Under the pieces are notes generated by a model, which was not told the DNA's origin, did not search any database, and saw only the letters and a program-made list of their open reading frames with translations. The translations under genes were made by a program, and so were the position numbers. 64,000 bases of DNA from Hydrolagus colliei (Eukaryota), in contig CM068742.1 in NCBI GenBank assembly GCA_035084275.1, positions 154,752,001-154,816,000 on the forward strand, read 5' to 3'. Positions 6,253 through 63,156 of the stretch are shown piece by piece. The number at the start of each line of letters is the position of its first letter. The stretch's first letter is position 1.

Positions 6253-6636
6253 GTCATAAAAAGAAGCTCTCATCAGTGACTGGTACCAAGGGAGGTGATG
6301 CCACACTGCCCTGCTCCTTCACCAGGCCCAACACACACCAGAATCGTGCCACAGTCACAGTGATTTGGAGGAGAGGGAGGCCACAAGGGCAGCCAGTTTC
6401 TAATGACACTCTTGACCTCACCTCCCGCTCCAAACCCAGGGAGTCAGAGACAGTGAATGAAGGAAATCGCTATAACCTGGTTGGGAATGTGAGGGATGGA
6501 GACGCTTCCCTGAGGATCAGGGACCTGGAGTTAAACGACACCGACCAGTATTTCTGTCATGTACACGTCATGTTTATCAATAGCGGAGAACAACAAGATC
6601 ATGTGACACAGGACATGTCACAGCTGCTGGTTGTTG
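6253..6636 (+). CDS. SIGLEC15-like: Gene A exon: Ig V-set domain, Siglec-15-like, lacking the sialic-acid-binding Arg
   Basis: Acceptor ttcctgtctcAG|GT and donor G|GTAAGA; 384 nt, phase 1-1. Encodes TLPCSFTRP..VIWRRG..RYNLVGNVRDGDASLRIRDLELNDTDQYFCHVH, which matches the Siglec-15 V pattern (LPCTFTHP, GNPRRNDLSLR, YFCRVE) with R->H. Confidence 0.92.
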
Positions 6637-7229
6637 GTAAGAAATCTCTTGTCTCTGTGGGACATGGAAAGGGGTAAATGTCAATGTTCACGGGCGCATC
6701 ATTTCAGACTAGGTTTGTCTCATTCCTTACCCTGTGCCTCACGTGTTAATTAGCAAAAGAAACATGTTATGAAATAACGGAACCTGTTACTGGGGGAGGG
6801 TTTCATCCTACGTCTCCCATTAACGCTGCAGCCAAAGTTAGGGTGATCCTAGCTGGACAAGCAGCCGGTATCATGCAATGTGGTTTTTCAGAAGATCACA
6901 GGATTGGTCTGAATGAAGAAAGCCCATCCAATCTTATCCTTACGGAACTTCCCCAATTGCTCCCTACTCCCTACCAACCCCTCACCCCTCACCTTGGTAC
7001 ATTGGTATCAAGCGGAGTATAAAAATCTGTAATTGCACTCACTGAAAGCAAATTGGCTAGATAGGTAAAAAGGAAACACTTTCAGTGCTGTGGGGTAAGA
7101 GCGGGGTAGGGGGAGTAGTTGGTAACTGAGTGGATCCTGTAGGTTGAAGCACTTGGCTTGCAAGTCAGAGGACCTGGATTCAATTTTGGGGCAGGAAAAG
7201 CATTGGGCAACCTTCTTTACTCCACACTC

Positions 7230-7825
7230 CTCCATTTTCCCAGCAATGAGTATGAATCATTGTAAAAGGTTTAGAGTACAAGAGAAGGGAATTCTTGCTG
7301 CAACTGTATAGGGCCTTGGTGAGACTTCACCTAGAGTATTGTATGCAGTTTTGGTCTCCTTATTTAATAAAGGACATACTTGCCTTAGAGGGGGGGGGGC
7401 AGTGTAGATTCATTAGGTTAGTTCCTGGGATGAGGGGACTAAACTATGAAGATAGGTTGAATAAACTAGGGCTGTATTCTCTAGAGTAAGAAGAATTAGG
7501 GGAGATTTGTTTTGAAGCATGTAACATTCTCAAAGGGCTGGATAAAGTAGACACCAAGGGATTGTTTCCCTGGTAGGAGAATCTATAACCAGGGTTCATA
7601 ATCTTCAAATTAAGGGTCAGCCTTTTAGAACAGAGTTGAGGAAACATTTCTTCACTCAGAGGGTAGTGAATTTATGGAATTCACTACCCCAGAAGGCTGT
7701 AGATGCCCAGTCCTTAAACATTTTCAAGGCTGAGACTGATAGATTTTTTTTAAAAGAAACAGATTTGGGGATATGGGAATGGGGCAGGTGATTAGAGTTG
7801 GGTGAGAAGATCAGCCATGAGATAT
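7230..7825 (+). mobile_element. CR1 3' fragment (older subfamily)
   Basis: [21 protein letters not shown]..; frameshifted. Confidence 0.85.
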
Positions 7826-8218
7826 CTAGAAGATGTGAAAAGCATTATATTAAATGCAATTATTATTATTATTATTATTAGTGGTAGTAAATGCAAGGAT
7901 GATTACATATTATAGCTCTTTCAAAGAGCCAGAACAGAGATGATGGGCAGAATCGCCTTCTTCCTGCTATAAGATTCTGTGATATTAAAAAGGAATTATT
8001 AAGTATTTGAAGAGGAACATTATAAACAAAATTAAGATGTACAAGAAAAAAAGCAGGCAATTGGATTAAAGTAGAAAAACAACAACAAAATTACATTTGT
8101 ATAATGTCTTTCACGTTGGGAGGACATCCCAAGAACACCTTTGAGTAAGTAAGTACCAGCAGATATGACAGTGAAAGTTATTTAATTAGAATAACTCTGT
8201 GTTTCTTTATACCCAAAG

Positions 8219-8659
8219 CTCCGGCCATCATTGTTAATCTGTCCCTCGTGGCCGGTGATGGAGCCGGAGGTGGCATCGTGTGCACGGCTGAGGGGGAACC
8301 GCTGGCCACCATCACATGGATCGACCCCCAGAATAACACGCTGCCCGTCAACACCCACACGTCAATCACACATATACCAGACACACATCTAACCGTGGGG
8401 GAGATCTGGGGCCTGAGGCTGAGGGGAACTTACCGCTGTGTAGCTGAGAACACACAGGGCAGTGACACACAAGACATCCTCATCACTGCCTTACAGAGTG
8501 TTGGGGACAAGGAGAGTGATGGGGACAGGGAGAGTGATGGGGACAGGGAGAATGGTGGAGATAAGGAGAGTGGTGGAGACAATACAGTATGTATCGTAGT
8601 CTCCACTGTGGTGCTGCTCGTTCTGCTGACTGCCTTAATTATCTGGTGGGTAAAGAGAG
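8219..8659 (+). CDS. SIGLEC15-like: Gene A exon: Ig C2-type domain, repeat-extended stalk and uncharged TM
   Basis: Acceptor tttctttatacccaaAG|CT and donor G|GTAGGT; 441 nt, phase 1-1. Encodes APAIIVNLS..CTAEGEPLATITW..YRCVAENTQG (Siglec-15: APRIVNIS..CTAEGEPPPALAW..YTCTAANSLG); TM VCIVVSTVVLLVLLTALIIWWV followed by KR. Confidence 0.92.
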
Positions 8660-8755
8660 GTAGGTGTTTACAACAATAACAACAAAATTACATCTGTATA
8701 GTGCCTTTCACGTCAGGAGGATATCCCAATGCACTGACAGATATAGTGATTTTGT

Positions 8756-9040: not shown

Positions 9041-9044
9041 AGGA

Positions 9045-10335
9045 TATTTCGAGTAAACTAGATAGGGGTGAATCAGTGGATGTTGTCTATTTGGACATCC
9101 AGAAGGCATTCGATATGGTGCCGCATTAAAGGTTGATCCATAAGATAGGGGCTTACAGAATTGGGGGAAAATATTAACATGGATTAGGTAATAGTTAATA
9201 GGTAGGAAACAAAGAGCAGGGATAAACAGGTCTTTCTCAGATAGGCGGGATGTGACTAGTGGAGTGCCACAAGGATCAGTTCTTGGACCTCAGCTATTTA
9301 CCATCTACATCAATGATCTAGATAAGGACATTGAGCTTAATATATCTAAATTTGCTGATGATACGAAACTAGGAGGAAGCATTAATACCAAGGATGATAT
9401 TTTAAAAATGCAGCGCGATATAGATAGGTTAGGTGAGTGAGAAGGTAGGTGGCAGATGCAGTATAATGTAGGGAAGTGCAAGGTCATTCACCTAGGTAGC
9501 AAAAACATCAACAACAACAATAACTTCAATTTATATAGCGCCCTCCACACCGGACGGTGTCTCAGAGTGCTTCGCATCAGAGCAGGTTATTCTTTAGAGG
9601 GGGAGAGATTGGAAACTGTTAGCATGTCGAGGGACTTGGGTGTCCTTGAACACCAAAACCAAAAGTTAATATGCAGGTGCAGCAGGCAATTAGGAAAGCT
9701 AACGGTATGTTAGCTTTCATTATGAAAGGGTTAGAGTATAAGAGTAGGGAAGTCTTGCTGCAGCTGTATAGGGCCCTGATGAGACCACACCTGGAATACT
9801 GTGTGAAGTTTTGGTCTCCTTATTTAAGAAAGGATGTACTTGCCTTGGAGGGAAGTACGTTGGTTGTAGCGTAGGTTTACTAGGTTAGTACCTGGAATGA
9901 GGGGCATGAGTTATGATGATAAGTTGATTAATTTGGGCCCATATTCTCTGGCATATAGAAGAATTAGAGGGGATCTTATGGAAACCTATAAGATTATTGA
10001 GGGGCACGACAAAGTAGATAGTGTTTCCCCTGCTTGGAGAATCTAAAACCAGGGGTCACAGTCTTAAAGTTAGAAAAAGCCCTTTCACACTGAGTTGAGA
10101 AAAAACTTCTTCACTCAGGGTGGTGAATGTATGGAATTCTTTACCCCAAAGGGCTGTTGATGCTCAGTCCTTGAACATATTCAAGACCAAGTTGATTAGA
10201 TTTCTCATTTATAAGGGATTAAGGGGTATGGGGATAAGGCAGGTAGCTGGAGTTAGAGTAGAATATCAGCCATGATTGAATGGCGGGGCAGGCTCGAGGG
10301 GCCGAATGGTCTACTCCTGCTCCTATTTCTTATGC
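9045..10335 (+). mobile_element. Degenerate CR1 RT/3' region with a short L2-tail insert (~9505-9580)
   Basis: VPQGSVLGPQLF..FADDTKL and RPHLEYCVKFWSP in broken frames. Confidence 0.9.
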
Positions 10336-10699: not shown

Positions 10700-10730
10700 G
10701 TGTTGGAGTTTCCCGCCAGCATTCAGAGAG
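10700..10730 (+). CDS. Gene A cytoplasmic exon 1 (GVGVSRQHSE)
   Basis: ctttggtctcttcAG acceptor, GTGAGT donor; 31 nt, phase 1-2. Same-length paralog at 54421-54451 (-). Confidence 0.85.
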
Positions 10731-12083: not shown

Positions 12084-12145
12084 TCGTCAAATGGATTTGG
12101 TTGTTGACAACGACTTGGTTCAGTCTCAGCTGCCTACAGGAGACG
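12084..12145 (+). CDS. Gene A cytoplasmic exon 2 (SRQMDLVVDNDLVQSQLPTGD)
   Basis: ttctatttttttAG acceptor, GTAACT donor; 62 nt, phase 2-1, which restores frame. Paralog at 50939-51000 (-). Confidence 0.85.
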
Positions 12146-12602: not shown

Positions 12603-12662
12603 ATGAAGCTGCTGTAATCTACAGCGTGGTCACTCCATCACCAGCTCGGCAAACAGGTTTAG
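12603..12662 (+). CDS. Gene A ITIM exon 1 (DEAAVIYSVVTPSPARQTGL)
   Basis: tgttgtgtctctgacAG acceptor, GTAAGT donor; 60 nt, phase 1-1. VIYSVV fits the ITIM consensus. Confidence 0.87.
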
Positions 12663-13369: not shown

Positions 13370-13429
13370 ATGAAGCTGCTGTGATCTACAGCGAGGTTAC
13401 CCCAGCACTGGCCAGGCAAACAGCTTCAG
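13370..13429 (+). CDS. Gene A ITIM exon 2 (DEAAVIYSEVTPALARQTAS)
   Basis: Same acceptor context as the previous exon, GTAAGA donor; 60 nt, phase 1-1. VIYSEV is an ITIM. Confidence 0.87.
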
Positions 13430-15234: not shown

Positions 15235-15284
15235 ATGTGATTTATGCTGTTGTCAACATGATGACGAGTTCAGTTAACCAGTGA
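15235..15284 (+). CDS. Gene A terminal coding exon with ITIM (NVIYAVVNMMTSSVNQ*)
   Basis: ttgtttctcttctAG acceptor, phase 1; VIYAVV ITIM; TGA at 15282-15284. Paralog at 44386-44438 (-). Confidence 0.85.
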
Positions 15285-16080: not shown

Positions 16081-16215
16081 AGGGTAAATCAACAGGTCAA
16101 TCTCCACTGGCGCAATGTTACAGACAAGGTTTGTCTCATTCCTTACCCCATTCCTCATGTGTTAATTGGTAGAAGAAATTTCTTTGAAATAGCAGAAACT
16201 TTAGTTTGTTACTGG
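16081..16215 (+). other. Remnant of the V-C2 intron of pseudogene B (V exon itself absent)
   Basis: agggtaaat..gtcaat..ggcgca..cagacaaggtttgtctcattccttaccc..gtgttaatt aligns with gene A intron ~6670-6790, just 3' of the V donor. An L2 3' tail lies upstream where the V exon should be. Confidence 0.75.
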
Positions 16216-16386: not shown

Positions 16387-16819
16387 AACCAGAGTTCTCC
16401 CCAGCCCAGCCAAACCAGAGCTCTCCCCAGCCCAGCCCAGCTAAACCAGAGCTCTCCCCAGCCCAGCCCAGCTAAACCAGAGCTCTCCCCAGCCCAGCTA
16501 AACCAGAGCTCTCCCCAGCCCAGCCCAGCTAAACCAGAGCTCTCCCCAGCCCAGCTAAATCAGAGCTCTCCCCAGCCCAGCTAAACCAGAGCTCTCCCCA
16601 GCCCAGCCCAGCTAAACCAGAGCTCTCCCCAGCCCAGCCCAGCTAAACCAGAGCTCTCCCCAGCCCAGCTAAACCAGAGCTCTCCCCAGCCCAGCCCAGC
16701 TAAACCAGAGCTCTCCCCAGCCCAGCCCAGCCCAGCTAAACCAGAGCTCTCCCCAGCCCAGCTAAACCAGAGCTCTCCCCAGCCCAGCCCAGCCAAACCA
16801 GAGCTCTCCCCAGCCCAGC
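16387..16819. repeat. Minisatellite, about 15 units of TAAACCAGAGCTCTCC(CCAGC)2-4 (26/31/36 bp)
   Basis: Directly visible tandem array; unit length varies in steps of the pentamer CCAGC. Confidence 0.97.
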
Positions 16820-17715: not shown

Positions 17716-17767
17716 GACTTCAAGAAAGTTGTTTAGTTAGAATAACTGTGTTTCTTTATACCCAAAG

Positions 17768-18137
17768 CTCCCGCTGTCCTCCTGACTCTGTCCCTCGTGG
17801 CCGGTGATGGAGCCGGAGGTGGCATCGTGTACACGGCTGAGGGGGAACTACCAGCCACCATCAGAGGGATTGATCCCCAGAATACAAGCTGCCCGTCAAC
17901 ACCAGCCACACACCAGTCACACACATACCAGACACATATCTAACTGTGGGGAAGATCTGGGACCTGACGCTGAGGGGAACTTATCGCTGTGTAGCTGAGA
18001 ACACACAGGGCAGAGACATCCTCATCACTGCCCCCCACAGAGTGATGGGGACAGAGAAAGTGATCCTGTGTCTGATATACGCAGCTAAATACCTGTTTAT
18101 GTTGGTCATGGGGATCGTTCTCATTAGAAAACTAAAG
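17768..18137 (+). pseudogene. SIGLEC15-like: Pseudogene B: Siglec-15-like C2 + Lys-containing TM exon
   Basis: Acceptor and C2 DNA are near-identical to 8219 and 56116. Lesions: B-strand Cys TGC->TAC, TW->RG, and a 1-nt deletion (aatacaagctgccc vs aataacacgctgccc) giving TAA. The downstream frame encodes TM VILCLIYAAKYLFMLVMGIVLI-RKLK, then a GTTAGT donor (phase 0). Confidence 0.85.
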
Positions 18138-19166
18138 GTTAGTTCATTACCAGAAATGAGCCCAGAGCTGGGATGGGTTCAGGGTGAGCTGAAAGATGCG
18201 GCCAACTTGGTAGCCAGATTCCTGAGCCAGGTATTCCCACCATCCTTCAGGATGATGCTTGATGCTGGATGAGCTGGTGTGGCACACCAGTTGGATTTGG
18301 AGGAACAGAAATTCAATTGTGAATTAAAAAGCTCTAATTGTTTAGGTGGATCTAATTGGACAAGCAGTTAGAAGCTTGAGACAGTTTTAGCAATGGCCAA
18401 CTATTGTAGCTAATTATACTTTAGCAAACCCAAGGGACCTTTGGAGTCCATAACCCTTGCCAATCCGCATGCCTCTCATGGTGCAAATTGTTGGAGGTGG
18501 TGTCCTTCTGATGACTTGTTAAACCAAGGTTTTCTCTGCCTCTACAGTTAGACATTAAAGATCCCATAATTTTATTGGAAAAACGAAGGAAGTTTTACTC
18601 TCCCTCTATCCTGGCCAACAATCCACTAAATAAAACAGGTCACTCATTTCCCGACTATTATTGGGACGTTGCTGTGTAAGAATTGGCTGCCGTTTTCACC
18701 CACAAAATACAGTCACTCCACTGTGAAGAGAAAATGCGCCCAGTGACCATTCCATGTATTACAACAGTTTGATTGTCACCCTCCCAATCTTAGTAATGTA
18801 CACAGTTATAATGGTGATACTATTTAACAAGTATAACATGATCACTCTGGAAATATTTCCCCAAATAGTCTCAGGATTGTTAGCTGAGCCAGATGTTCTC
18901 CTGGTTCAATTGGTAACACACATACCTCTGGGACAAAAGGTTGTGGGTTCAAAGTCCATGTTGGGAGAACGCAATAGGAGAGTAATGCTGCATTGCTGAA
19001 AAGTTACATCTTCCAAAGAGAGGTAAACCAAGGTCCCATCTATGTTTGTTTGTGGGACTTTGCAATGTGCACATCAACTGCTGTGTTTGCCTACAAATTG
19101 CTCACCACATTTTAAAATTTCAGATGAAATTCAGCCATTCAATGGTATTCTCTTTCCCCCTCACAG

Positions 19167-21204: not shown

Positions 21205-21565
21205 AGAACATAAGATCATAAGAATTAGGAGCAGCCTCGAGCCTTCCCCGCCATTCAATTAGATCATGGCTGATCCTCTAATCTAACTCCATTTACCCGC
21301 ATTATCCCCATATCCCTTAATCCCTTTATCCACCATAAATCTATCAATCTCAGTCTTGAATATGTTCAAGGACTGAGCATCTACAGCCCTCTGGGGCAGA
21401 GAATTCCATAAATTCACCACTCTCTGAGTGAAGAAGTTTTTTCTCAATTCAGTGAGAAAGGGCTGACCCCTAATTTTAAGACTCTGACCCTTGGTTATAG
21501 TTTCTCCAACCAGGGGAAACAGTCTCCAACTATCTACTCTGTTGTACCTCTTAACAATCTTATAG
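21205..21565 (-). mobile_element. CR1 3' fragment
   Basis: ORF 21283-21657 (-) contains LFPLVGETITKG..NFFTQRVVNLWNSLP. Confidence 0.85.
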
Positions 21566-21679
21566 GTTTCTATAAACAGACAGACACACGCAGTATTTGT
21601 TTCAGACACAGGTTTTATTGGTGGATATGTTGGAAACATTGCAGTGAAAATAAACATGGACAGAGATCAATCCCTAGGC

Positions 21680-21950
21680 CCAGAGAGAGAGAGAGAAATA
21701 GAAGGATAGAATAGAGAGAGAGTGTGAGAGTTAGTGCTCGTGTAAGACTGAGCATCTGTAAGAGAGAGAGTGTGAGAGGTAGGGCCAGTGTAAGAGTGAG
21801 TGAGCATGTTTAAGAGAGAGAGAGAGTTATGGCTAGTGTAAGAGTGAGCATGTGTAAGAGTGAGAGAGTGTTTATGAGAGTTTGAGAGAGAGTGTGTGTT
21901 TGCGAGAGAGAGTGTGTGTGAGAGTGAGAGAGAGTGTGTGAGAGGGAGAA
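21680..21950. repeat. Degenerate (GA)/(GT) microsatellite
   Basis: Alternating gagagagt/gtgtgaga runs. Confidence 0.85.
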
Positions 21951-22104
21951 AGTCGATACAGGCAAGATGGGCCGACTGTTTTCTGTGCTATGAAATTCTA
22001 TAATTCTAAGAACATTTTGGTGAATCTGCGCTATATCCCTTCCAATATATTCTTCCTGAGGAACATAAAACTGAACGCAGTCTCCATATGGGATCTGAGA
22101 TAAT

Positions 22105-24526: not shown

Positions 24527-25182
24527 CTGTCAGAGGAAAAAAAGAGACACTGTAATTAACTCAGTCACACAATAGGCCTGAAATCTCTCTGAGTCTCAGT
24601 CTGTGTTTGTGTTTGTGCAGAACTGTGGATAACCTCTACATACAATCTATAGTTTACAGTCTATAGTATGGGACAAGAGCGTGCATGCGACTGCCAGGAC
24701 GGTGGAAGGTGAATTGGATAGTCTTTGGTCTTCTTTTTTGTAGCAATTTTTATGTAGATGGATGGGATTTCTTTATTAGAAACCGTCGAAAACGCAGCTT
24801 TCGTAACCAATCGTAATTTCAGAATGTAACACATTAAGATATCTATAAGTTCTTCAAAAGTAATAATAACGGAGTTCGGTGATAAGGCAGGTCCGGAAAA
24901 TCTCTATAGCATTTAGTGGGCAACAAGATTCGTGAATTGAATGAATGACTATTCTTAGAGGATTAATAATTATAATTATCCTTGCATTTGATATAGCACC
25001 TTATCACGTCATTGAGTCTCAAAGCACTTTATAGAATATACTATAAAGTGGATTAACCGTGAATTTTGCAAATGCGACAGCTAATTATGCACAGCAGTTT
25101 TACTACCTCTGCAAAAGAATCCACTAATAATTGCAAGTGGATTTGGAACTCAGCAACAGTAAGTCTGTGGTAGTGGACCCAC

Positions 25183-25548
25183 CTTTCTTGATCTTCCAAA
25201 TGATGAGGAACACTGCCACAAGGAGAATGACAACAAAGATGGCCGCAGAGCCACAGATGACCCAGAGTAATTCGGGGCTCAGCTTCTCCTCGTTGCCTTG
25301 GTTATAGAAGGTCTGGAAAACGATCCCCAAGTGGTTAGTGACAGTGCAGGTGTAGTTGCCGGTGAGATGCGGGTTGTATACCCAGCTCTCGATCTGATAG
25401 CGGCCCAGGTTGTGAGAGACCGAGCTCTGGTTGCCTCTGGGGTTGGCCCAGGTGATGGTAGGTCTGGGCTCGCCCTCTGCAGTGCACGTCAGCATCTCGT
25501 GGGTTTGGTTCACTTTGTGCAACGTCATGTTCAGGATCAAGGGCGGAC
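25183..25548 (-). CDS. SIGLEC15-like: Gene C C2 domain + uncharged TM exon
   Basis: Acceptor ttcctatcccggtgccAG, donor G|GTGGGT; 366 nt, phase 1-1. Encodes PPLILNMT..LTCTAEGEPRPTITW..GNYTCTVTNHLG; TM LLWVICGSAAIFVVILLVAVFLIIW-KIKK. Confidence 0.92.
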
Positions 25549-27071
25549 CTGGCACCGGGATAGGAAGTGGAGTCAACGACACAAATTCGGCAAAACCACA
25601 GACCCAACAACAACAACAAAAAACAAGATTGAAAATAGGGGAGGGTGTGGAGGCACCTTCTGGAGTTTAACCATTCACTGTTGCCTGCATCAATGTCAAG
25701 TAATATCAAGTTACATGTGGAATAATAAAAATCTTTGCATTTGACACAGCGCCTTATCATGTAGTTGAGACGTCTCAAAATGCTTCACAGAAGCAAACTG
25801 TAAAGTTGGTTGACTTTAGATTATTAGGCGGTATGGGGAGAAAGTATGAAATTGGAATTGAAAGAAATAGAAGAGGTACAGATCAGCCATGATCTAATTA
25901 AATGGCAAAACAGGCTCAAAGAACTGAATAGCCTCTTCCTATGTTCCTATGAGTTTGTATTTTGTGGGTGAAATTTGGTAGCCAATTGTATGTGTCCCAC
26001 AAACAGACATTTATTGAGTGACCAAATTATTGATTGAGTGATCCTCCGATCAACTGACAACTTGATCAACTGGGTTCATACGTTTACGAGGCCTGTGTAA
26101 TAAGGAAACTTGCCTAAGTTTCTGCCCCGACCGGGAATCAAAGACTTAAATTCAGTCTTATTTTTATAAAATCAGCAGTAAAAACAGCCTCCAAACTGAC
26201 ATGGGAAAGAATATATTTTACATAAATCTGTGCCTTTAATGGTTTCAAGGATTAACTTTCTTACATTCTGACAATTTTAGGATAAACTGGTTGTGAAGGC
26301 TGAGCTAGGCCGCAGGCTTCAGGAAAGTGGGTTCAGACTGCGTGGCTCGTGTGTCTCAATAGTCTGGTTCCTGCCCGAATGTCTAGGGTGGTCCTTGCCG
26401 GGAAAGCAGCAATACCACCACCAACAACAACAATTGTTGTATAGCTCTGTACATAGAATAACGTCTCACCAATGCCATGGTTAGATAACAAGTGAGGGGA
26501 GTGGGAGCTGACCATTAAATATGGTTGAATAGGCAAATTTTAAGGAGGAATTTCAAGATAGAAAAAAAGAGTTTTAGGTGGAGAGATTGAGGCAGAAATT
26601 TCGAGAGGTTATGGATATAGTGACTGAAGCAGCAGGAAGCTTGTCAAAAAAACTATAGTGGAAATGGATGCAGAGCATCAGGTAATGGCTTTCATGTCAG
26701 TAGGACCTTTCCCTCCTTTTCCCCCCTTACCTTCCTTTCTCCCCCTCTTCCTACCTGACTTTACCCCACCCCACTTTTCCCTCCCTCTCCCCCCCTTACC
26801 CTCTTTTCTCCCTTTCTCCCCTGGCCTCATTTCCGTGACTGTTTGTAGCCCACTGCTGTGGGCAATGTGGCTGCCTCTTTTGCCCACAAATATACAGTCA
26901 GTTTTCCTGCTCTCCTTCCCCCTGCCCCGGCCCTTCCCCTTGCCATCTCTCCCCTTTACCCTCTTTTCCCCCTTTCTCCCGTAATACCACTTCCATGATA
27001 GTTTGTGGGGACGCTGCTGTGCGCAATTTGGCTGCTGCGTTTCTCCCACAAATATACAGTCAATTCTCCTA

Positions 27072-27683: not shown

Positions 27684-28073
27684 CTGTCACCTCCAGCGTG
27701 ATGCCTGGGTTGCTCTCATGCTTGGACGTGTAGATCATCTTCCGTGAGATCTCCACACGGCAGAAATAATCCTCATTGTCCTCCAGCTCTGCCCTGTCCA
27801 GCTGGAGGGAGGCATCCTGATCTCTGGGGTTCCCGACCAGCATGTAACGCTTCCCTGCGTTCACTTTTACGTTCATCGTGTTATTGTCCTGAATCACCGA
27901 TTGGAATATAACCGGCCCTTTAAAGAATTTCCTTATTCTCCAGAGCACGGTGATCTCCACAGTGGTGTAGTGAGCGTAGGGGGAGGTAAACTTACAGGGC
28001 AGGATAACAGGGTCCCCCAACCTGCCACTCACTCTGCTTGGGACCTCTACCTTGACGACGTTCTCCACTCCGG
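27684..28073 (-). CDS. SIGLEC15-like: Gene C Ig V-set exon, Siglec-15-like, essential Arg intact
   Basis: Acceptor gtttcattgcaaaacAG, donor G|GTATGC; 390 nt, phase 1-1. Encodes VEVPSRVSGRLGDPVILPCKFTSP..GPVIF..RYMLVGNPRDQDASLQL..DYFCRVE. Confidence 0.93.
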
Positions 28074-28189
28074 CTGTTTTGCAATGAAACACACCAAACA
28101 CAAAAGATTAGAATACATTATACATGAGAATATAGAACACAGAAACAGGCCATTCAGCCCAACTGGTCTATGTCGGTGTTTATGCCCTG

Positions 28190-44385: not shown

Positions 44386-44438
44386 TCACTGCTCAGCTGA
44401 GCTCCACTTGGATTGGGCGACTTCAGCATAAACCACAT
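44386..44438 (-). CDS. Gene D terminal coding exon with ITIM (NVVYAEVAQSKWSSAEQ*)
   Basis: Acceptor ttgtttcccttctAG; VVYAEV ITIM; TGA at 44386-44388. Confidence 0.85.
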
Positions 44439-47843: not shown

Positions 47844-47903
47844 CTGAATCTGTTTGCTGGGCTGCTGCTGGGACAACCTCGCTGTAGATCACAGCAGCTT
47901 CAT
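47844..47903 (-). CDS. Gene D ITIM exon 2 (DEAAVIYSEVVPAAAQQTDS)
   Basis: 60 nt, phase 1-1, ctctgacAG/GTAAGA; VIYSEV ITIM. Confidence 0.87.
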
Positions 47904-49584: not shown

Positions 49585-49638
49585 CTGAATCTGTTTTCCA
49601 GGTCGGTACTGCCTCGCTATAGATCACAGCAGCTTCAC
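49585..49638 (-). CDS. Gene D ITIM-like exon 1 (GEAAVIYSEAVPTWKTDS)
   Basis: 54 nt, phase 1-1, ctctgacAG/GTAAGA; VIYSEA is a degenerate ITIM. Confidence 0.83.
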
Positions 49639-50938: not shown

Positions 50939-51000
50939 CATCTCCTGCAGGCAGTTGAGGTTGAACCATGTCATTGTTAACAACCGGATCCATTTGATGA
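50939..51000 (-). CDS. Gene D cytoplasmic exon 2 (SHQMDPVVNNDMVQPQLPAGD)
   Basis: 62 nt, phase 2-1, AG/GTAACT; homologous to 12084-12145. Confidence 0.85.
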
Positions 51001-51829
51001 CTAAAAAAAATGAAAACTTATTATATTTAACATTTTATAGAGGATAGAAGATAAAATCGTATTCAGAATCCTTACATTTGGTGCAGTGTCCTTCATATAT
51101 ATATGAAGGACACTGCACATATATATAATATGTCCTTCTATATCAGGAGGACGTCATCCACAGGATTTACTGTAAAGTGTATTATCAGAGTATTTTATGA
51201 AAATGCACCATTAAATTTATTAAGGGGATTATTGGCCAGGGCACCAGGAGAAACCCTCTTTTCTGTCCAAGCCTTGACATGGAGTCCTGTAGTTCAGGGG
51301 TTAAGCACTCACCTCGCAATTAAGAAACCTGGGTTTGATTCCTAGCAAGGTGAAACCTTGGGCAAGTTTCCTTACTTCTTATTGAGACTCATAGATTTTT
51401 TTTTAAATAGAGGGATTAGGAGATATGGGGATAGGGCAGGTAATTAGAATTAGGTCAGAAGATCAGCCATGATCTTATCGAATGGTGGGGCAGGATCGAG
51501 GGGGCGAATGGCCTACTCCTGCTCCTAATTCTTATGTTCTCACTCACATAGCTGATTATAATCCCTCAAAAAGAAAATAAATAAATTGGCCCCTTCTGTT
51601 TGTGAACTGCTCTGCACAATTGGCTGCTGCATTTTCTCCACTAAAATACAGTATATTCTGTGAAGCACTGTGAGATGTCTAGAAGAATTGAAAAAGCTCC
51701 ATATCAAATGCAATAATTATTATTATTACATGTGTTCATGGCCACAGCATTATGTGCAGTTCTGGGCAGCTCAGGAAGAATATAAAAGAAATAGACAAGG
51801 GCCAGCGAAGAATCAAGAAGAGTAAATTG

Positions 51830-54420: not shown

Positions 54421-54451
54421 CTGTCTGAATGCTGGTGGGAATCTCTGGCAC
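54421..54451 (-). CDS. Gene D cytoplasmic exon 1 (GARDSHQHSD)
   Basis: 31 nt, phase 1-2, AG/GTGAG; homologous to 10700-10730. Confidence 0.85.
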
Positions 54452-55500: not shown

Positions 55501-55738
55501 TCTGGAAGATGCAATTTGTTGTTCTCATTGTTGCATGTGGAAAATGGGACCCTCTAACAACATGGTTCACAGGGTCTATGGATACTCACTGTGGAGATAT
55601 GCAGCATTATACAGTAATTGGAATTAAAGGTAAATGGAGCTCACTGCAGCAGATTATTTGCTGAGCCAGGAGTGTGAGCGTGAGCAGCTAAGATGGACGC
55701 ACTGAGAATAATTACTCCCTTTGTCTGTAAACACCTAC

Positions 55739-56116
55739 CTCTTTTTACCCACCAGATAATGAAAGCAGTCAGCAGAATGAACAGCATCGCAATGGAGACA
55801 CCAACAAATACCATACTGTATTCCATACTACCACTCTGTGTTCCAGGAGCGAGGATGTCTCGGGTGTCATTGCCCTGTATGTTCTTAGCTACACAGCGGT
55901 AAGTTCCCCTCAGCTTCAGGCCCCAGATCTTCCCCACGGTTAGATGCTTGTCTGGTACATGTGTGACTGGTGTGTGGCTGGTGTTGACGGGCAGCGTGTT
56001 ATTCTGGGGGTCGATCCATGTGATGGTGGCCAGCGGTTCCCCCTCAGCCGTGCACACGATGCCACCTCCGGCTCCATCACCGGCCACGAGGGACAGATTC
56101 AGGATGACGGCCGGAG
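55739..56116 (-). CDS. SIGLEC15-like: Gene D C2 + uncharged TM exon
   Basis: Acceptor tttctttacaaAG, donor G|GTAGGT; 378 nt, phase 1-1. Encodes CTAEGEPLATITW..YRCVAKN; TM MVFVGVSIAMLFILLTAFIIWWV-KR. Confidence 0.92.
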
Positions 56117-56789
56117 CTTTGTAAAGAAACACAGAGTTATTCTAACCAAACAACTTTTCACTTTATGTCTGTGCTGGTGTCTGCTCCCCACTGAGCTCTC
56201 TTCTCTAACCCCATTCCCTGCTCTCTCTCTCCCCTTCGTGTCTGTGCTAGTGCTCACTCTTCAGTGGAGCTCCCTATGCTAACTCCATTCTTTCCTTGTA
56301 TATGTTGATATTCTTTATAACTTTCCTCTCCAAATTCCTTTTTAATATTTCTTTATTTTAAAATCTTTTTTATTATCCTCGTCTATTTTGTGGAGTTTCT
56401 TTAGGCATTTGATAATAAGAAGCATGTAAATCTAAAATGTCTAAAACATCAACGTTTTATAAATTTGACAATCACAAGAACACAAGAGATGAAGAAAGCC
56501 CTTCAGACCATTTTATCTCAACTTTCCCCACCCCTCCACCCCACTGTATATTCTGTGAAGTGCTTTGAGACTTCTCATAGACATGATAATAATAATAATC
56601 CTTGCATTTGATATAGTGCTTCTCACATCTTCTAGATGTCACAAAGCGCTTCACAGAATACACTATAAAGTGAATTGATTGTATATTTGTGGGTGAAACA
56701 AGACAGACAATTGTGCACACTAGTTTCCCACAATCAATCATGGACTGAAATGAACAATTTATTATTATTTTCATCAGGCACTATATCAA

Positions 56790-57460: not shown

Positions 57461-58340
57461 TTGTGCACAGAACTCGCTGGTTGCTGGTATCAGAAATCAC
57501 TGAAGTAAATCAGTAAGTCCCATGCCCTTTACTGACGGGAAACTAAATAATGCTCTTCTGATGGCTGTTCAGCTACTGGGATGGTAATCAATCTGTTACC
57601 ATCTGGCCGTGTGATTCAGCCTTACCTGTTTTATTGTGGTCAATGGATAGAAATGTTGAGATCATGGGATTAGATTCATGGAGTAGCCAGATATCTAACA
57701 GACAAAGAAGCCCATTGTGTTACCTGGGTCTCCATACTAAACGGTTGAGAGTTCCACCAATTTTCTATTTGAATAGTATGGTTCTGCACTGTCTCCCACT
57801 CTCTCCACCATTGACTTTCAGCAATGTCTCTTATGGGATCTCCTAGGAGGAACACCCCAAAGCTCAAGGTTTGGAGAGCCCAGATCATGCCTTGAGAAAG
57901 CTCCTGGAGTTTAACCAGGTTTAAAGAGATTCAAATAGCAAATGTAATAATCAAATGTGATTAATAAAATAATAATGAAATAATAAATGTAATAATTTAG
58001 AATACAACAGTACAATAGAACAAGAGGCACTGTAATGCCTTCATTCAAATCAATCCTGTTATCTTTTGAAGAAAACTCATTGCTTGTCATTGAAGGCACT
58101 GATCGGCAAGCTTTCGGCTGCCTGTAGAGCTGGGAGCGCCTTACACGTGAAGAATTTAACAAGAGATAAGCGGGAAGACACCCTGCCCACACTAACCAAC
58201 TAAAGTTCCTGCTGGACTATAGTGCATTTCTTATCATTAACACGTGAGGAACAGGGTAAGGAATGAGACAAATCTTGTTTGTAATGATGCGCAAGTGAAC
58301 ATTGACCTTCCATGTCCCTCAGAGACAAGAGATTTCTTAC

Positions 58341-58724
58341 CAACAACCTGCAGCCGTGACATGTCCTGTGTCACCTGGTCTTTTTGTTGTTCATCATCGA
58401 TAAACATGACGTGTACGTGACAGAAATACTGGTCGGTGTCGTTTAACTCCAGGTCCCTGATCCTCAGGGAAGCGTCTCCATCCCTCACATTCCCAACCAG
58501 GTTATAGCGATTTCCTTCATTCACTGTCTCTGACTCCCTGGGATTGGAGCGAGCGGCGAGGTCAAGAGAGTCATTAGTAACTGGCTGCCCTTGTAGCCTC
58601 CCTCTCCTCCAAATCACTGTGACTGTGGCACGATTCTGGTATGTCTGGGGCCTGGTGAAGGAGCAGGGCAGTGTGGCATCACCTCCCTTGGTACCATTCA
58701 CTGATGGGAGCTTCTCTTCATGAC
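58341..58724 (-). CDS. SIGLEC15-like: Gene D V2 exon (paralog of gene A V exon, FCHVH)
   Basis: Acceptor ttcctgtctcAG, donor G|GTAAGA; 384 nt, phase 1-1. About 20 of 128 residues differ from gene A V. Confidence 0.92.
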
Positions 58725-59403
58725 CTGAGACAGGAACAGGATTGGAATAGTGCAGAGCAGTCAGTGAGACACATACATGTTACACACTGTGAAATCCTGT
58801 ATATTGTTATCTATCTTTCATGACATCCTGTCCCACATGCCTGTGTTCCTCACTCACCCTCTCTGAGCATATGTCAGCACAGTGTCTCACACACAAACCC
58901 TAGTTTATAACAGAACGACAGCAGGTGTAATGAGGATTTTAAAGATGGTTTACTCAGATCAAGGACCCACAAAGCCTATGAACAGAATAACCAATTCACA
59001 TGGAAGATGTTCCTTGAGAAAATTCTTTCTCTTTTCCTTTTGTGTGGTAAATCAGGTGTCTGATATGCTATTAAGAGAATGTATGGCAGAGTCAGAGTTC
59101 CAAATATGTATCACTTACACCTGGAAATTTTCGTTTATTTGCAATGGAATGTGCACTCTATCCTTGTCGGGACAGAGGCTTACCTAATTCCAGAGAGTTT
59201 TATAAGCAAGTTGGTAATTGCCAAGTACTCGAGATCTCAGATTGTATATTGGGAGTAATTCCTGGAGATTAATCAGATTCAACTGCCTAGTTTATTATTG
59301 AGAATATTGTCTGGCAAATTTCCATCTCAGTCAATAGGTTTAGTAGGAGCTGAGTGGGAATATTCCTGGACTCACTGGTCTGCCACTCCAATCCTGGCAT
59401 TGA

Positions 59404-59887
59404 TTTACTAGGATGGTGCCAGGATTGAGGGACTTCAGCTATGAGGAGAGGCTAGATAGGCTAGGGTTATTCTCTCTGGAGCAGAGAAGATTGAGGGGAG
59501 ACCTAATAGAGGTTTATAAGATCATGAGGGGTTTCGACAGGGCAAATAGAGAAAAACTATTTCCACTCGTGGGTGAATCTGTGACTCGTGGTCACAGATT
59601 TAAAATAGTTTCAAGGCGCAGTAGAGGGGAGCTGAGGAGAAATTTTTTCACTCAGCGAGTTGTTCGAATCTGGAATGCATTGCCTGAAAAGGTGGTGGAG
59701 GCTGATTCGATAACAACTTTTAAAAGGGAATTAGATCTTTATTTAGGAAGAACGGGTCTATTAGGCTATGGGGAGCGGGCAGGGCAATGGGATTGAATCG
59801 CTCTTTTCAAAGAGCCGGCACAGACTAGATGGGCCGAATGGCCTCCTTTTGTGCCGTAAAATTCTATGATTCTATGATTCTATGATT
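59404..59887 (+). mobile_element. Young CR1 3' fragment
   Basis: ORF 59413-59796 differs by 2 residues from the C-terminus of ORF 2924-4291; full (attctatg) tail. Confidence 0.95.
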
Positions 59888-60545: not shown

Positions 60546-61400
60546 GGACTTCACATGGACAATGGGGCGGTGATAGGGTCATGAAGTGGGAGATGACACT
60601 GCCTATGAAGGGAGAAATTGAGGTGGTTGACGAGCATGGAGTTTACATAATCAAGTATGGATACTATGAATGTGTGGATGAGTGTCTCGCCAGCCTGCAG
60701 TGTGAGACAGTTGCAGAACGGGCGATGTTGTGGAGGTGGGGAAAGGCAGAGTGGATCATGCATGAGTGTGGGGTGGAGAGGATAATTGGGGTTCAAAAAA
60801 GATGCCAAGATTCCGGACAGGCTTAGTGAGATGCAATACGCATCCATGGATGGTGATACTGCCAGCGCTTGAGGTGTGGAGACATTGATGGGAGACAATC
60901 AAGAGGGCCTCGGTGTTGTTGATGTTCAACTGTAGAAACTTTCATGCAGGACCTGATGTCTGACAGACACACTGTCAGGATAACAGTGGTCCTAGAGTTG
61001 AGGGTGGATGCAGAGAGATAGAGTTGGCTGTCATCCATATATATGTGGAAGTTGACCCCCATATAAGTAGATGATGTCACCAAGAGGGAATGGGTATTGA
61101 AGAGAAGGGACCAAGGACAGAACCCTGAGGAATGCTACAAGGTGGTGGAGGGGCTAGAAGAGAAACCATTTGTGGAGATAAAGTGCTGCCATATTGCTGG
61201 GGTGTCAGCAGCAGATGCTTATACAATGTTTTGGGTGCTTGACAGGCATGCCCTGACCACCAGGCAAGGAAGAGGTGGGAGGGGGAGGAGGACTGTACAT
61301 CAAATAAGGTCCTGTAAAGCTGCTTTCACCCGCTTGCAAGCAGGTTCCAATAGAGTCATGGAGGCTGAGGGACAGGTGGCCATCGGTGTGTTTGAAGAGG
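60546..61400 (-). mobile_element. Degenerate L2 RT remnant
   Basis: GVNFHIYMDDSQLYLS (ORF 60823-61083). Confidence 0.8.
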
Positions 61401-62034
61401 AACGGGTGCTCAAACCAGCATTTGTTCTCTTTGCTCCACCGGGTATGGCCTCCTCCATGTCCCCCGAATCCTCCGCTCCATCCTTGGCTGCCATGCTTTC
61501 AGCCACTATGCCCCGAAGAGAAGGGACCAAGGACAGAACCCTGAGGAATGCTACAAGGCTCTGCAACTCCCTTCCTCACTCCCTTCCCCTCGCCCCCTCT
61601 ATTCCCAGTTTCAGGTCCGAGCTAAAGACATTTATCTTCGACCGCACCTTTGGTCACCTTTCTACCCCTGCCCCTGGCTCGGTCCCTGGGATCCATTGTT
61701 GTGAAGTGCTCTGAGACGTCATCCAGCATGGAGGGCGCTGTAAAAATTGAAGTTGTTGTTGTTGAAAAGGTAGGATTTGTTGAGACATGAAGGTAGGGAT
61801 GAGTAAGAGTGGTAGAGGGATGGAGTTCCAGTAGTTAGCGACATAGAAACTGAAGGCTTGGCCAATGCTGTGGTGTGGAGAGGAAGGGGAATATGGAGCA
61901 AGCCAACAGCAACTGAGGTGAGTGGAGAAGTTTGGAGAGCTAAGGAGGTACTGGAATTGGATGGACTTGTAATTGACGATGGTCAATTACATCAGTAATT
62001 GGGATGCCACTCCCCAGCACCAGCCAATAGGAAA

Positions 62035-62636
62035 CTAGCTGCTGCAACTGTATAGGGCTCTGGTGACACTGCACCTAGAGTATTGTGTGCAGTTTTGGTC
62101 TCCTTATTTAAAAAAGGACATACTTGCCTTAGAGGGGGTGCAGCGTAGATTCACTAGGTTAGATTCTGGGATGAGGGGACATGACCTATGAGGATAGGTT
62201 GAATAAACTAGGGCTGTACTCTATAGAAGAATTACAGAAGAATTATGGGGGATCTTATTGAAACATATAAGATTCTTAAAGGGCTAGATAAAGTAGGCAC
62301 TGAGGAACTGTTTCCCCTGGTAGGAGAATCTATAACCAGGGGTCACAGTCTTAAAATTAAGGGTCAGCCTTTTAGAACAGAGTTGAGGAAACATTTCTTC
62401 ACTCAGAGGGCAGTGAATTTATGGAATTCACTCCCCCAGAAGGCTGTAGATGCTCAGTCCTTGAACATTTTCAAGGCTGAGACTGATCGATTTTAAAAAA
62501 ATAGAAGGATAAGGGAATATGGGGATAGGGCAGGTAATCAGAGTTAGGTGAGAAGATCAGCCATGATATTATTGAATGGTGGAGCAGGCTCGAGGGGCCG
62601 AATGGCCTACTCCTGCTCCTAATTCTTATGTTCTTA
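62035..62636 (+). mobile_element. CR1 3' fragment in the gene D V1-V2 intron
   Basis: GDLIETYKILKGLDKV..FFTQRAVNLWNSLP. Confidence 0.9.
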
Positions 62637-62766
62637 TGCTCATCATCACCTTCCTTCACTGGGAACACTCGCTTCCTATTGCCCATCCTGGGATGGGATA
62701 TGTCCCACTGACTCCGGCACCAGTGAGGATCATCACGTCTCATTCCCACTTCCCATCGTTCCTCAC

Positions 62767-63156
62767 CTGTAACATACATACGTGTTCTGGGGCCAATTTC
62801 AAACTTTCCATCCTCACCCTGGAGCTCCACACGACAGGAGAACACCTTATCATTGTCCTCTCCCCTCAGCTGGTTTATCTTTATTGTAGCGTCGTTCCTC
62901 CTCGGGTTCCCAATCACTTTGTATCGATCTCCCTCGTTTACATCAATGACATTTTGATACTTTCCCTGTGAATCTGGCCTATAGTTTGTATATTTAAAAT
63001 ACACAGGACCAGCCCAGCCTCCCTTCCACTTGATGGTGATGTTGCCTGTGTATCTGGGGTGAGGGTGAGTGAACTTGCAGTACATGATGACTGGTGACCC
63101 TAACCTGCCAGTCACTGTATCAGGGATCTCCATTGTCCAGCCATTCTCACTGATCC
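62767..63156 (-). CDS. SIGLEC15-like: Gene D V1 exon: Siglec-15-like V-set with essential Arg
   Basis: Acceptor tgtgtgtcctcacAG, donor G|GTGAGG; 390 nt, phase 1-1. Encodes WTMEIPDTV..CKFTHPHPRYTG..W..GPVYF..RYKVIGNPRRND..SCRVE, the closest match in the window to mammalian Siglec-15 motifs. Confidence 0.93.

Follow-up and report, generated by a model that had tools for sequence, protein, structure and literature searches.

Does a short stretch of chimaera DNA encode a paired set of activating and inhibitory immune receptors built on a Siglec-15 scaffold? The original prediction for this locus proposed such a set, made up of four related V/C2 receptor genes, in a lineage that was probably chondrichthyan. 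We analysed 64,000 nucleotides of the Hydrolagus colliei genome (GCA_035084275.1, contig CM068742.1, positions 154,752,001 to 154,816,000), hereafter the window; all positions are counted from its first nucleotide.

Results

Inventory of the window and affinity to Siglec-15

A profile scan of all six-frame open reading frames identified exactly four V-set exons (E 1e-39 to 1e-41), in the frames at 6180-6674 (+), 27670-28107 (-), 58240-58779 (-) and 62474-63235 (-). The same scan identified four C2 exons, at 8149-8676 (+), 25127-25666 (-), 55644-56141 (-) and, for locus B, 17746-18269 (+) in two frames. No further V or C2 exons were detected in the window, with every remaining open reading frame at E > 0.1. 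Four related loci (A to D) do lie within 57 kb as predicted, but B has no V exon and consists of one C2-plus-transmembrane exon alone. The predicted cluster is bounded on either side by a splice acceptor, that of the A V exon (6253) and that of the first V exon of D (63156). A and D are convergently oriented, with C and B between them and their 3' ends about 30 kb apart. The exon joins of all gene models were made from homology and splice consensus.

The predicted affinity to Siglec-15 was borne out. For every domain type the top match of known structure was, by a wide margin, human Siglec-15 (PDB 7ZOZ), with E 1.4e-32 for V plus C2 of gene C, 8.7e-18 for the first V domain of D (V1) and 1.7e-20 for its second V domain (V2) plus C2. 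The next families followed at 5e-9 to 2e-7, a gap of 10-23 orders of magnitude. In an AlphaFold model of the D ectodomain, one domain fits 7ZOZ_A at 2.2 A (TM 0.85, 33% identity). The closest proteins to the window genes are from Callorhinchus milii (62-84% identity), and the window aligns with a C. milii locus at 81-89% nucleotide identity, introns included. These matches bear out the chondrichthyan origin guessed in the original prediction and point to a holocephalan other than C. milii. Homologues in sharks and rays carry the NCBI name Siglec-15.

In a tree of V domains that took in CD33 and Siglec-5, all V domains of the window type stood apart from these two with support of 99. The C-type, V1, V2 and bony-vertebrate sequences each formed a clade, with a four-way split among them. 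Against tetrapod, lungfish and teleost proteins, the C V domain and D V1 had similar scores.

Gene C has the architecture of Siglec-15, one V-set exon (27684..28073, minus strand; Pfam V-set E 2.4e-10) and one C2-set exon with an uncharged transmembrane segment that lacks the lysine (25183..25548, minus strand). Identity is 71% to C. milii 'Siglec-15' P0013 and 45% to Heptranchias perlo Siglec-15 P0014. Gene C is the V-C2 gene that NCBI has named Siglec-15 in sharks and rays. As predicted it shows no clear ITIM, and a search of the window for a C tail or ITIM exon found none.

Genes A and D encode putative inhibitory receptors

Gene A lies on the plus strand. Its V-set exon (6253..6636; Pfam V-set E 1.3e-15) is of the V2 type, in frame between AG/GT sites in phase 1-1, and is 89.7% identical in nucleotides to the V2 exon of D. 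It is followed by an exon for a C2-set domain (Pfam I-set/Ig_3), an acidic stalk and an uncharged transmembrane segment (8219..8659), also in frame between AG/GT sites, in which the stalk is encoded by an 18-bp tandem repeat of 4.9 copies (8495-8582). The tail begins with a micro-exon (10700..10730), kept in D together with its AG/GT sites and leaving the frame open, and a second cytoplasmic exon (12084..12145), likewise kept in D and placed in the exon order of C. milii RefSeq model P0011. Two 60-nt ITIM exons encode DEAAVIYSVV (12603..12662, matched by tblastn to the ITIM repeats of P0011) and DEAAVIYSEV (13370..13429), and a last coding exon carries DVIYAVV and the stop codon (15235..15284); splice sites and frame are intact in all three. 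Exon for exon, the A tail corresponds to that of P0011.

Gene D, on the minus strand, has two V exons and the plan V1-V2-C2, whereas A within the window has a single V exon and reads V2-C2. The D exons for V1 (62767..63156), V2 (58341..58724; Pfam V-set E 3.7e-15) and C2 plus an uncharged transmembrane segment (55739..56116) all have splice sites and an intact frame, and the cytoplasmic micro-exon (54421..54451) and the following exon (50939..51000) are kept in A. Next comes an ITIM-type exon (49585..49638) in which a 6-nt deletion leaves an off-consensus VIYSEA; its splice sites and frame are intact, and splicing may include or skip it. An ITIM exon encoding DEAAVIYSEV (47844..47903) and a last coding exon with DVVYAEV and the stop codon (44386..44438) complete the gene, both with splice sites and frame preserved.

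After splicing, the open reading frames run to 362 aa for A (partial) and 470 aa for D. Both place motifs of the form (I/V/L/S)xYxx(L/V/I) in an intact frame after an uncharged transmembrane segment: VIYSVV, VIYSEV and VIYAVV in A, and VIYSEV and VVYAEV, besides the degenerate VIYSEA, in D. This agrees with the uncharged transmembrane segments and multi-ITIM tails predicted for these two genes. Judged by sequence, A and D encode type I membrane receptors with two or three ITIMs in the tail. No V1 exon of A and no leader exon of A or D was found within the window. Any V1 exon of A would lie upstream of position 1, and the D leader exon should lie past position 64000; in C. milii the leader exons are 0.9-1.3 kb upstream of V1.

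The essential arginine and candidate ligands

The essential arginine of human Siglec-15 is R143 (PMC7226832). This F-strand arginine of the N-terminal V-set domain is present in C (YFCRVE) and in V1 of D (FSCRVEL), both aligned to human FCRVEF, and on this motif the V domain of C and V1 of D may bind sialylated ligands. In the membrane-proximal V2 domains of A and D (FCHVHV) a histidine takes its place. A tentative alternative, which we consider unlikely although it is the strongest of those weighed here, is that the V1-V2-C2 genes, though derived from Siglec-15, have ceased to be lectins and have protein or pathogen ligands instead, leaving C as the only gene to bind sialic acid. The V2 histidine occurs in nearly all family members, and in several homologues V1 has lost the arginine as well, to Leu, Trp or Gln (P0007, P0002, P0051 and P0025). 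Copy number and the number of V2 domains range widely, up to three V2 domains in skate proteins, and many fast-evolving paired receptors have protein or pathogen ligands. Furthermore, comparison of A with D gives a dN/dS of about 1.7 for V2 and about 0.8 for C2, although these ratios come from small counts. Against the loss of lectin function, V1 retains the arginine, in the FxCRVE context of human Siglec-15, in D, in C. milii P0001 and in several sharks.

The family is shared by chimaeras, sharks and rays

NCBI-named V1-V2-C2 proteins of both the lysine type and the ITIM type occur in chimaeras, sharks and rays. Intact lysine-type genes are found in C. milii, Heterodontus, Mustelus, Rhincodon and Mobula, and their transmembrane segment is conserved across chimaera, shark and ray. 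Its likeness to the transmembrane segment of bony-vertebrate Siglec-15 is weakly above that expected from composition (z 1.2-2.8). We found no paper describing this activating/inhibitory receptor family of cartilaginous fish, which is known from automatic gene models alone.

The original prediction explained the locus by an expansion within this lineage, in which a single-copy V-C2 Siglec-15 gave rise to a working four-locus activating/inhibitory set in the window. The closeness of four related loci, the presence of both lysine and ITIM signatures, and the closer kinship of A and D to each other than to any other sequence would all suit such an expansion, but we hold it to be improbable. The expanded genes have a V1-V2-C2 rather than a V-C2 architecture, and B consists of one exon, which is frameshifted and has no V domain to go with it. 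Moreover, the V1-V2-C2 plan and both transmembrane types are common to sharks and rays, and therefore the family predates this lineage. An activating/inhibitory Siglec-15-like family holds at the level of the clade but not within the window, where the lysine-type copy is a pseudogene fragment. The sequences suggest that only the A/D duplication, or homogenisation of the two, is a recent step, the family itself being older.

Linked genes with like ectodomains and opposite signalling types are present elsewhere. In Heterodontus, a lysine/ITIM pair about 80 kb apart is joined as sisters at 100/100 and is 92% identical in V2+C2; in C. milii the two types stand in tandem at 85-90% identity. A V2+C2 tree grouped sequences by species and not by signalling type. 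Signalling type requires 7 changes on it, at least 5 of them forced by strongly supported branches, and neither type formed one clade in any of 200 bootstrap trees. This pattern appears to fit an ancient pair that gene conversion has homogenised rather than an expansion confined to one lineage.

Locus B is a decayed lysine-type paralogue

B retains a pseudo-exon for C2 plus transmembrane segment (17768..18137, plus strand) and a remnant of the intron that follows V2 in A and D (16094..16214, plus strand; 77-79% identity to 6680-6785 and 58308-58190). A V exon is absent, and a six-frame scan found no V-set ORF from 8.7 to 17.7 kb. The predicted transmembrane lysine (YAAKYL) is indeed encoded, in an intact segment (VILCLIYAAKYLFMLVMGIVLI), and it is the only lysine-bearing transmembrane segment of the window. 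B had been thought to share near-identical C2 DNA with A and D and to switch to an unrelated transmembrane segment. We found C2 identities of 85-90%, and the B segment is not unrelated sequence, since it is of the lysine type that homologues in C. milii and sharks conserve; over C2 plus transmembrane segment, B is 76.7% identical in nucleotides to a lysine-type C2 exon of the C. milii cluster.

Could B be functional, its frameshift a sequencing error, as an activating partner perhaps expressed through the V exons of A? Acceptor, lysine segment and GT donor have all stayed intact, and the locus follows A on the same strand at a distance of 2.5 kb. Nevertheless, three independent disabling changes fall in the one exon: a 1-bp deletion that does not fall in a long homopolymer, the loss of an invariant cysteine (IVC to IVY) and the loss of an invariant tryptophan (ITW to IRG). 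A 9-bp deletion is additional, no V2 exon precedes the retained intron scrap, and the stop codon and last exon of A intervene upstream. A functional B is accordingly very improbable; it is what remains, in decayed form, of the last ectodomain/transmembrane exon of an activating-type paralogue with a transmembrane lysine.

A and D are separate loci

Between A and D, dS rises from 0.047 in V2 to 0.12 in C2 and 0.25 in the tail, a gradient drawn from few substitutions. That the two are haplotypes, or one locus duplicated by mis-assembly, is scarcely credible, since for all their shared exon plan and roughly 90% nucleotide identity over exons and adjoining intron they are inverted on either side of C and B, differ by 10-15% in nucleotides and protein alike, have unlike intron lengths (V2 to stop codon 9 kb in A, 14 kb in D), diverge in the tail to the dS just given, differ in the stalk repeat peculiar to A, and have a parallel in the several tandem copies of C. 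milii.

Discussion

The explanation that we favour, in which A and D are inhibitory, C is Siglec-15-like and B has decayed, with the functions and gene conversion proposed here, has a joint probability of roughly 80%. On this view the window belongs to a cluster of Siglec-15-family genes in a cartilaginous fish. Its activating arm is dead in the window, and locally the cluster therefore consists of inhibitory receptors and a Siglec-15-like gene. Judging from their motifs, the phosphorylated ITIMs of A and D may recruit SHP-type phosphatases, which would damp myeloid or lymphoid activation. In the intact lysine-type genes elsewhere, the transmembrane lysine is predicted to pair with a DAP12-type adaptor, and these genes would give the opposite signal from a near-identical ectodomain; no adaptor gene lies within the window. 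Gene conversion may keep the ectodomains of both signalling types alike within each species.

Paired receptors of the Ig superfamily are clustered and fast-evolving, with shared ectodomains joined to either ITIMs or a charged transmembrane segment (PMC3533184, PMC5112662, PMC2413239). KIR/LILR, PILR, SIRP, CD300, TREM, teleost NITR/LITR, Xenopus CEACAM and FcR-like receptors follow the same logic, but the sequence affinity of the window genes lies elsewhere, and none of these families came near the top in the solved-structure searches.

Siglec-15, with its V-C2 ectodomain, has been described as an activating Siglec that is conserved, its transmembrane lysine for DAP12/DAP10 being conserved from fish to mammals (PMC7226832). 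Each domain type of the window finds its best match in the bony-vertebrate protein (human Q6ZMC9, PDB 7ZOZ; also bird, frog, coelacanth and lungfish). The likeness extends to the arginine context FxCRVE in C and D V1, to the C2 motif CTAEGEPxPxxxW and, in B and its intact homologues, to the mid-membrane lysine. Unlike in bony vertebrates, where that lysine is defining, the V-C2 gene of the cluster (C) lacks it, while those of the lysine type carry an additional V domain in which the arginine is missing; the genes are also multi-copy and clustered, with ITIM tails on most copies.

Teleost siglec15l ('sialic acid binding Ig-like lectin 15, like'; Conger conger XP_061119044, Albula KAG9345091) joins a V-C2 ectodomain and an uncharged transmembrane segment to a tail with the ITIM-like motifs IIYADI, VCYAEV and VCYTEV, a likeness at the level of motifs. 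Its single V domain, however, falls in the bony-vertebrate V clade.

Siglec-11/16 are paired Siglecs of primates, and in this pair and in Siglec-5/14 neighbouring genes with near-identical ectodomains have either an ITIM tail or a charged transmembrane segment for DAP12. Siglec-5/14 are primate paired Siglecs as well (PMC4042635). As in cartilaginous fish, the ectodomains of these primate pairs cluster by species, a pattern ascribed to gene conversion, and the activating member is sometimes lost, as B is here. The primate pairs, however, are CD33-related or of Siglec-11 type, primate-restricted and young, whereas the cartilaginous-fish pair, with its V-V-C2 ectodomain, belongs to the Siglec-15 lineage and is common to chimaeras, sharks and rays.

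Results

The window contains no gaps and has a G+C content of about 44%. Scanning for stop-to-stop ORFs and searching every six-frame ORF with a profile recovered four V-set ORFs at 6180-6674 (+), 27670-28107 (-), 58240-58779 (-) and 62474-63235 (-), with profile E values of 1e-39 to 1e-41. The same search identified C2 ORFs at 8149-8676 (+), 25127-25666 (-) and 55644-56141 (-), plus a fourth at 17746-18269 (+) that is divided between two reading frames. All remaining six-frame ORFs of the window scored E > 0.1. Among Pfam families, V-set was assigned to the V exons (at E values from 1.3e-15 to 2.9e-6) and I-set/Ig_3 to the C2 exons. The original prediction had placed a receptor cluster between 6253 and 63156; the first V exon has its splice acceptor at 6253 and the last at 63156. 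Given four V and four C2 exons, strong E values and limits that fall on acceptors, the predicted cluster is genuine and lies far outside what chance would give, and the window holds a real, well-delimited Siglec-15-family cluster.

The family was assigned by three separate searches against all solved structures. The human Siglec-15 structure 7ZOZ was the top match in each, as expected of the Siglec-15 scaffold that had been proposed: for V+C2 of gene C at E 1.4e-32 (next Siglec-5, 5e-9), for the first V domain (V1) of gene D at 8.7e-18 (next CD33, 2e-7) and for the membrane-proximal V domain (V2) plus C2 of D at 1.7e-20 (next about 6e-8). CD300, TREM and pIgR were not near the top in any of the three. 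The arginine of the human FCRVEF motif is kept in C (YFCRVE) and in D-V1 (FSCRVE), and V2 of A and D reads FCHVHV at this position. An AlphaFold model of the D ectodomain contained three beta-sandwich domains (mean pLDDT 71), one of which superposed on 7ZOZ_A with a TM-score of 0.85, an rmsd of 2.2 Å and 33% identity. When the whole D ectodomain was searched with Foldseek, generic three-Ig proteins ranked above 7ZOZ (10-18% identity); for this predicted structure the single-domain match to 7ZOZ is the only informative one.

Genes A and D carry an uncharged transmembrane segment (TM) and an ITIM tail, and their Ig exons are all phase 1-1 with AG/GT borders. Gene A (+) has a V exon at 6253-6636 and an exon encoding C2, an acidic stalk and the uncharged TM at 8219-8659, both bordered by AG/GT and in open frame. 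Its tail exons (10700-10730, 12084-12145, 12603-12662, 13370-13429 and 15235-15284) and those of D (-; 54451-54421, 51000-50939, 49638-49585, 47903-47844 and 44438-44386) were found as conserved islands between the two genes, splice sites included. The joined exons of A form a 362-residue open frame with a tail reading ...DEAAVIYSVV...DEAAVIYSEV...DVIYAVVNMMTSSVNQ* and three consensus ITIMs. This tail is matched exon for exon by the Callorhinchus milii RefSeq ITIM-type model P0011. The Ig exons of D, also on the minus strand, encode V1 (63156-62767), V2 (58724-58341) and C2+TM (56116-55739). The resulting 470-residue model has VIYSEV and VVYAEV in its tail, and an off-consensus VIYSEA sits in an exon with a 6-nt deletion. 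An 18-bp coding tandem repeat (x4.9) at 8495-8582 produces the acidic (S/G)DGD(K/R)E stalk in A and is absent from D; stalk length or charge may differ between the two inhibitory paralogues.

No V1-type exon for A was found in window positions 1-6252, a region of LINE reverse-transcriptase debris. Neither a hydrophobic-ATG/donor scan nor tblastn with homologous leaders gave a convincing leader exon in the window. The leader exons of C. milii lie 0.9-1.3 kb upstream of V1, and at this spacing the D leader would fall beyond position 64000.

A and D are mutually closest relatives in the V2+C2 tree (support 100/99). Their synonymous divergence, based on few substitutions, rises from 0.047 in V2 to 0.12 in C2 and 0.25 in the tail, which hints that the ectodomain was homogenised more recently; dN/dS was about 0.8-1.7 on small counts. 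The concern attached to the original prediction, that A and D are mis-assembled alleles of one locus, is contradicted by the sequence. The two genes converge from opposite strands and enclose B and C, the stalk repeat is confined to A, V2 and the stop codon are separated by 9 kb in A but by 14 kb in D, and the two tails have diverged by ~25% at synonymous sites.

Gene C (-) consists of a V exon (28073-27684) and an exon for C2 and an uncharged TM (25548-25183), and it does not have the TM lysine of Siglec-15. Cytoplasmic exons of C were not detected at E better than about 1 by shark-tail tblastn or by a tail profile over the minus-strand ORFs of 18-25 kb. A GA/GT-rich minisatellite with non-coding low-complexity 'SHTLSL' ORFs occupies 21713-21953, where the tail exons are expected.

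Locus B is a single exon, 17768-18137. Relative to the C2 exons of A and D, a TGC->TAC change turns the invariant IVC into IVY, the invariant tryptophan is gone (ITW->IRG), a 1-bp deletion past ...DPQN results in stop codons, and 9 bp are deleted close to the G strand. The second half encodes, in the shifted frame, an intact lysine-bearing TM segment (VILCLIYAAKYLFMLVMGIVLI), and a good donor comes directly after it. Farther upstream, a scrap of the intron that lies downstream of V2 in A and D remains at 16094-16214; the V2 exon itself is missing. The stretch from this intron remnant to the pseudo-exon includes a 31-bp tandem repeat of ~14 copies (CCCAGCCCAGCTAAACCAGAGCTCTCCCCAG; 16400-16819). 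As assembled, B is a pseudogene fragment that could not yield a receptor. The predicted YAAKYL motif is thus present, but a receptor-coding B is contradicted by the frameshift, the lost Cys and Trp and the missing V2. The C2 DNA of A, B and D had been called near-identical and the TM of B unrelated. Neither description held: C2 identity was 90% for A-D, 85% for A-B and 88% for B-D, and B aligned at 76.7% over 438 bp, TM part included, to a C2 exon with a lysine-type TM in the C. milii cluster. Shark and ray homologues have lysine segments that are similar to the B TM as well.

Nested, inverted non-LTR retrotransposon fragments were observed at 1-4400, 37445-37831, 39549-40076 and 59402-59887, with Pfam RVT_1 matches in ORFs 2921-4288 (+), 858-1454 (+) and 1-684 (-). 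Because some copies are 97-99% identical (for example 1792-2149 versus 59887-59530), the element is suggested to have been recently active. Introns of all three genes A, C and D contain an interspersed repeat of ~300-600 bp (7296-7823, 9756-10334, 21206-21575, 27145-27408, 51383-51540 and 62040-62640). Copies at 70-83% identity occur in C. milii and Heterodontus loci (L001, L002), and this is therefore an old element common to cartilaginous fishes.

C. milii supplied the closest database proteins, at 62-73% identity to A and 71% to C, with sharks next. Per V domain, D-V1 and C were 80-84% identical to C. milii. Over exons and flanking intron, nucleotide identity between the window and a 40-kb C. 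milii locus was 81-89%. None of the matches was marked as a protein of the window itself, and the source is therefore probably a holocephalan other than C. milii. The family was surveyed by a profile search of 1.84 billion representatives and by name look-ups, with the short matches taken from a list full of giant multi-Ig proteins. Three gene types were found in cartilaginous fishes. The C type (V-C2, uncharged TM) is called Siglec-15 in Carcharodon, Cetorhinus, Heptranchias, Amblyraja and Leucoraja; Mobula has this type too. The lysine type, which has V1-V2-C2 where Siglec-15 has V-C2, is called Siglec-15 in Heterodontus, Mustelus, Rhincodon and Mobula; in C. milii an older model bears that name and LOC103174418 is uncharacterized. 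Names differ for the V1-V2-C2 ITIM type: Heptranchias has it as 'Siglec-12', Heterodontus as 'CXADR-like' and Scyliorhinus canicula as 'Siglec-15', and the Mobula birostris protein is uncharacterised.

Several public models are incomplete or misnamed. In Heterodontus francisci (CM071039.1, locus L003) a V1 exon at 5351-5713 lies 4.6 kb upstream of the annotated start of protein P0012, which is without V1 because the annotation skipped this exon; the NCBI 'CXADR-like membrane protein' P0012 is a misnamed V1-V2-C2 ITIM receptor of the Siglec-15-type family. Several Ensembl-derived C. milii UniProt models (P0003, P0004, P0005 and P0009) begin with MYSVTLTALHYSNPVPVS, a translation of the intron sequence that immediately precedes the V2 acceptor; window 6195-6252 can be read likewise. 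Such models are 5'-truncated artefacts that hide V1. V-domain number is strikingly labile in the Siglec-15 lineage, as lungfish and skate illustrate. The Amblyraja radiata proteins P0033 and P0041 have three V2 domains each, with one V1 ahead in P0033, and Protopterus annectens (P0015/P0029) has a Siglec-15 isoform with two Arg-bearing V domains as well as a protein of 1128 residues that contains seven V domains of the Siglec-15 type. In Heptranchias perlo (CM068640.1, locus L004, 31382-37926) a convergent 656-residue V-set/Ig gene lies 3.5 kb from the 3' end of the C-type Siglec-15 and could mirror the layout of C beside a paralogue in the window.

In a V-domain tree of 64 rows, Siglec-15-type domains separated from human CD33 and Siglec-5 (support 99). 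They formed clades of cartilaginous C type (95), V1 (93), V2 (100, long stem) and bony vertebrates (92), the last comprising human, bird, frog, coelacanth and lungfish Siglec-15 together with teleost Siglec-15-like. The tree gave no resolved branching order among these four clades, and C-V and D-V1 scored alike by BLAST against bony-vertebrate Siglec-15; we therefore do not pick a single cartilaginous gene as the Siglec-15 orthologue. The lysine-type TM was weakly above shuffled controls and composition when compared with the bony-vertebrate Siglec-15 TM (z 1.2-2.8), and no homology between the two is therefore claimed.

The V2+C2 tree (18 members) followed the species order of chimaeras, rays and sharks. 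Signalling type was interleaved on it and required seven changes between lysine and ITIM types, of which strongly supported branches force at least five; neither type formed a single clade in any bootstrap tree. Activating and inhibitory genes were sisters in Heterodontus (100/100; 92% identical), Scyliorhinus (100/99) and Mobula (99/96), and C. milii pairs were 85-90% identical. Both TM types are recognisably kept across the chimaera, shark and ray lineages. The simplest reading of these sequences is that two old signalling lineages have had their ectodomains homogenised inside each genome. The C. milii genes stand in tandem, with an ITIM-type gene between the lysine-type genes P0002 and P0001 and an extra V1, V2, C2-TM exon set between P0002 and the ITIM-type gene; the Heterodontus lysine-type and ITIM-type genes are oppositely oriented and ~80 kb apart.

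Discussion

Siglec-15 is described as belonging to a set of four conserved Siglecs and as a single activating receptor of V-C2 structure, whose DAP12-binding lysine is said to be conserved 'from fish to mammals', and fishes are said to own just these four (PMC7226832; bioRxiv 10.64898/2026.08.25.746757). A full-text literature search returned no published description of cartilaginous-fish Siglec-15 relatives, Callorhinchus and sharks included. Their gene models are already public, known solely as automatic annotations with inconsistent names, and paired Siglecs with gene conversion are a known principle. What is new here is paired Siglec receptors on a Siglec-15-derived V-V-C2 scaffold. The Siglec-15 lineage of cartilaginous fishes is a multigene cluster in which ITIM and lysine forms share this novel ectodomain in concerted evolution, accompanied by a plain V-C2 gene that has no lysine. 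An activating/inhibitory family, as originally proposed, is found for the clade, with lysine and ITIM types in chimaera, sharks and rays, but the window's own B is a pseudogene. Nor did this lineage expand it, as had been suggested: the family is old and both TM types are common to all three groups. For the base of the jawed vertebrates, where few such families have been characterised, the cluster offers a concrete, testable case of paired innate receptors; it also makes one ask which of these genes is truly orthologous to Siglec-15.

The present analysis shows the architecture and motifs, the affinity to the family, that B is a pseudogene, and how the genes group in the trees. From established knowledge of Siglecs, C and V1 would recognise sialoglycans in an arginine-dependent manner; V2, in which the arginine is replaced, is unlikely to be a sialic-acid binder. 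SHP would be expected to be recruited by the A and D ITIMs, by analogy with established ITIM signalling, and the lysine of intact homologues in other species may pair with an adaptor as in DAP12 signalling.

The teleost Siglec-15-like proteins P0119 (Conger conger), P0092 (Albula), P0120, P0155 and P0157 have a Siglec-15-type V-C2 and an uncharged TM. ITIM-like motifs occur in the tails of the first four and none was scored in P0157. Their juxtamembrane W-x-K/R-x-K/R-G resembles that of cartilaginous ITIM-type and C-type genes. As in the cartilaginous ITIM type, the Conger and Albula proteins unite a Siglec-15-type ectodomain with an inhibitory-type tail. This union thus extends beyond cartilaginous fishes, and an ancient origin of the pair is possible. 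Tentatively, and with a probability of roughly 0.3, lysine (activating) and ITIM (inhibitory) Siglec-15-type genes may have lain adjacent in the jawed-vertebrate ancestor and met different fates. In cartilaginous fishes they would have persisted as a gene-converting pair for over 400 million years and gained a second V domain, teleosts would have retained siglec15 and siglec15-like, and tetrapods would have been left with the activating gene only. If so, the textbook 'conserved, single-copy, activating' Siglec-15 would be the survivor of an old paired system.

Homogenisation of ectodomains between paired receptors is known from Siglec-5/14 and Siglec-11/16. The cartilaginous-fish receptors follow the same pattern, with ectodomains that are alike within a genome across signalling types.
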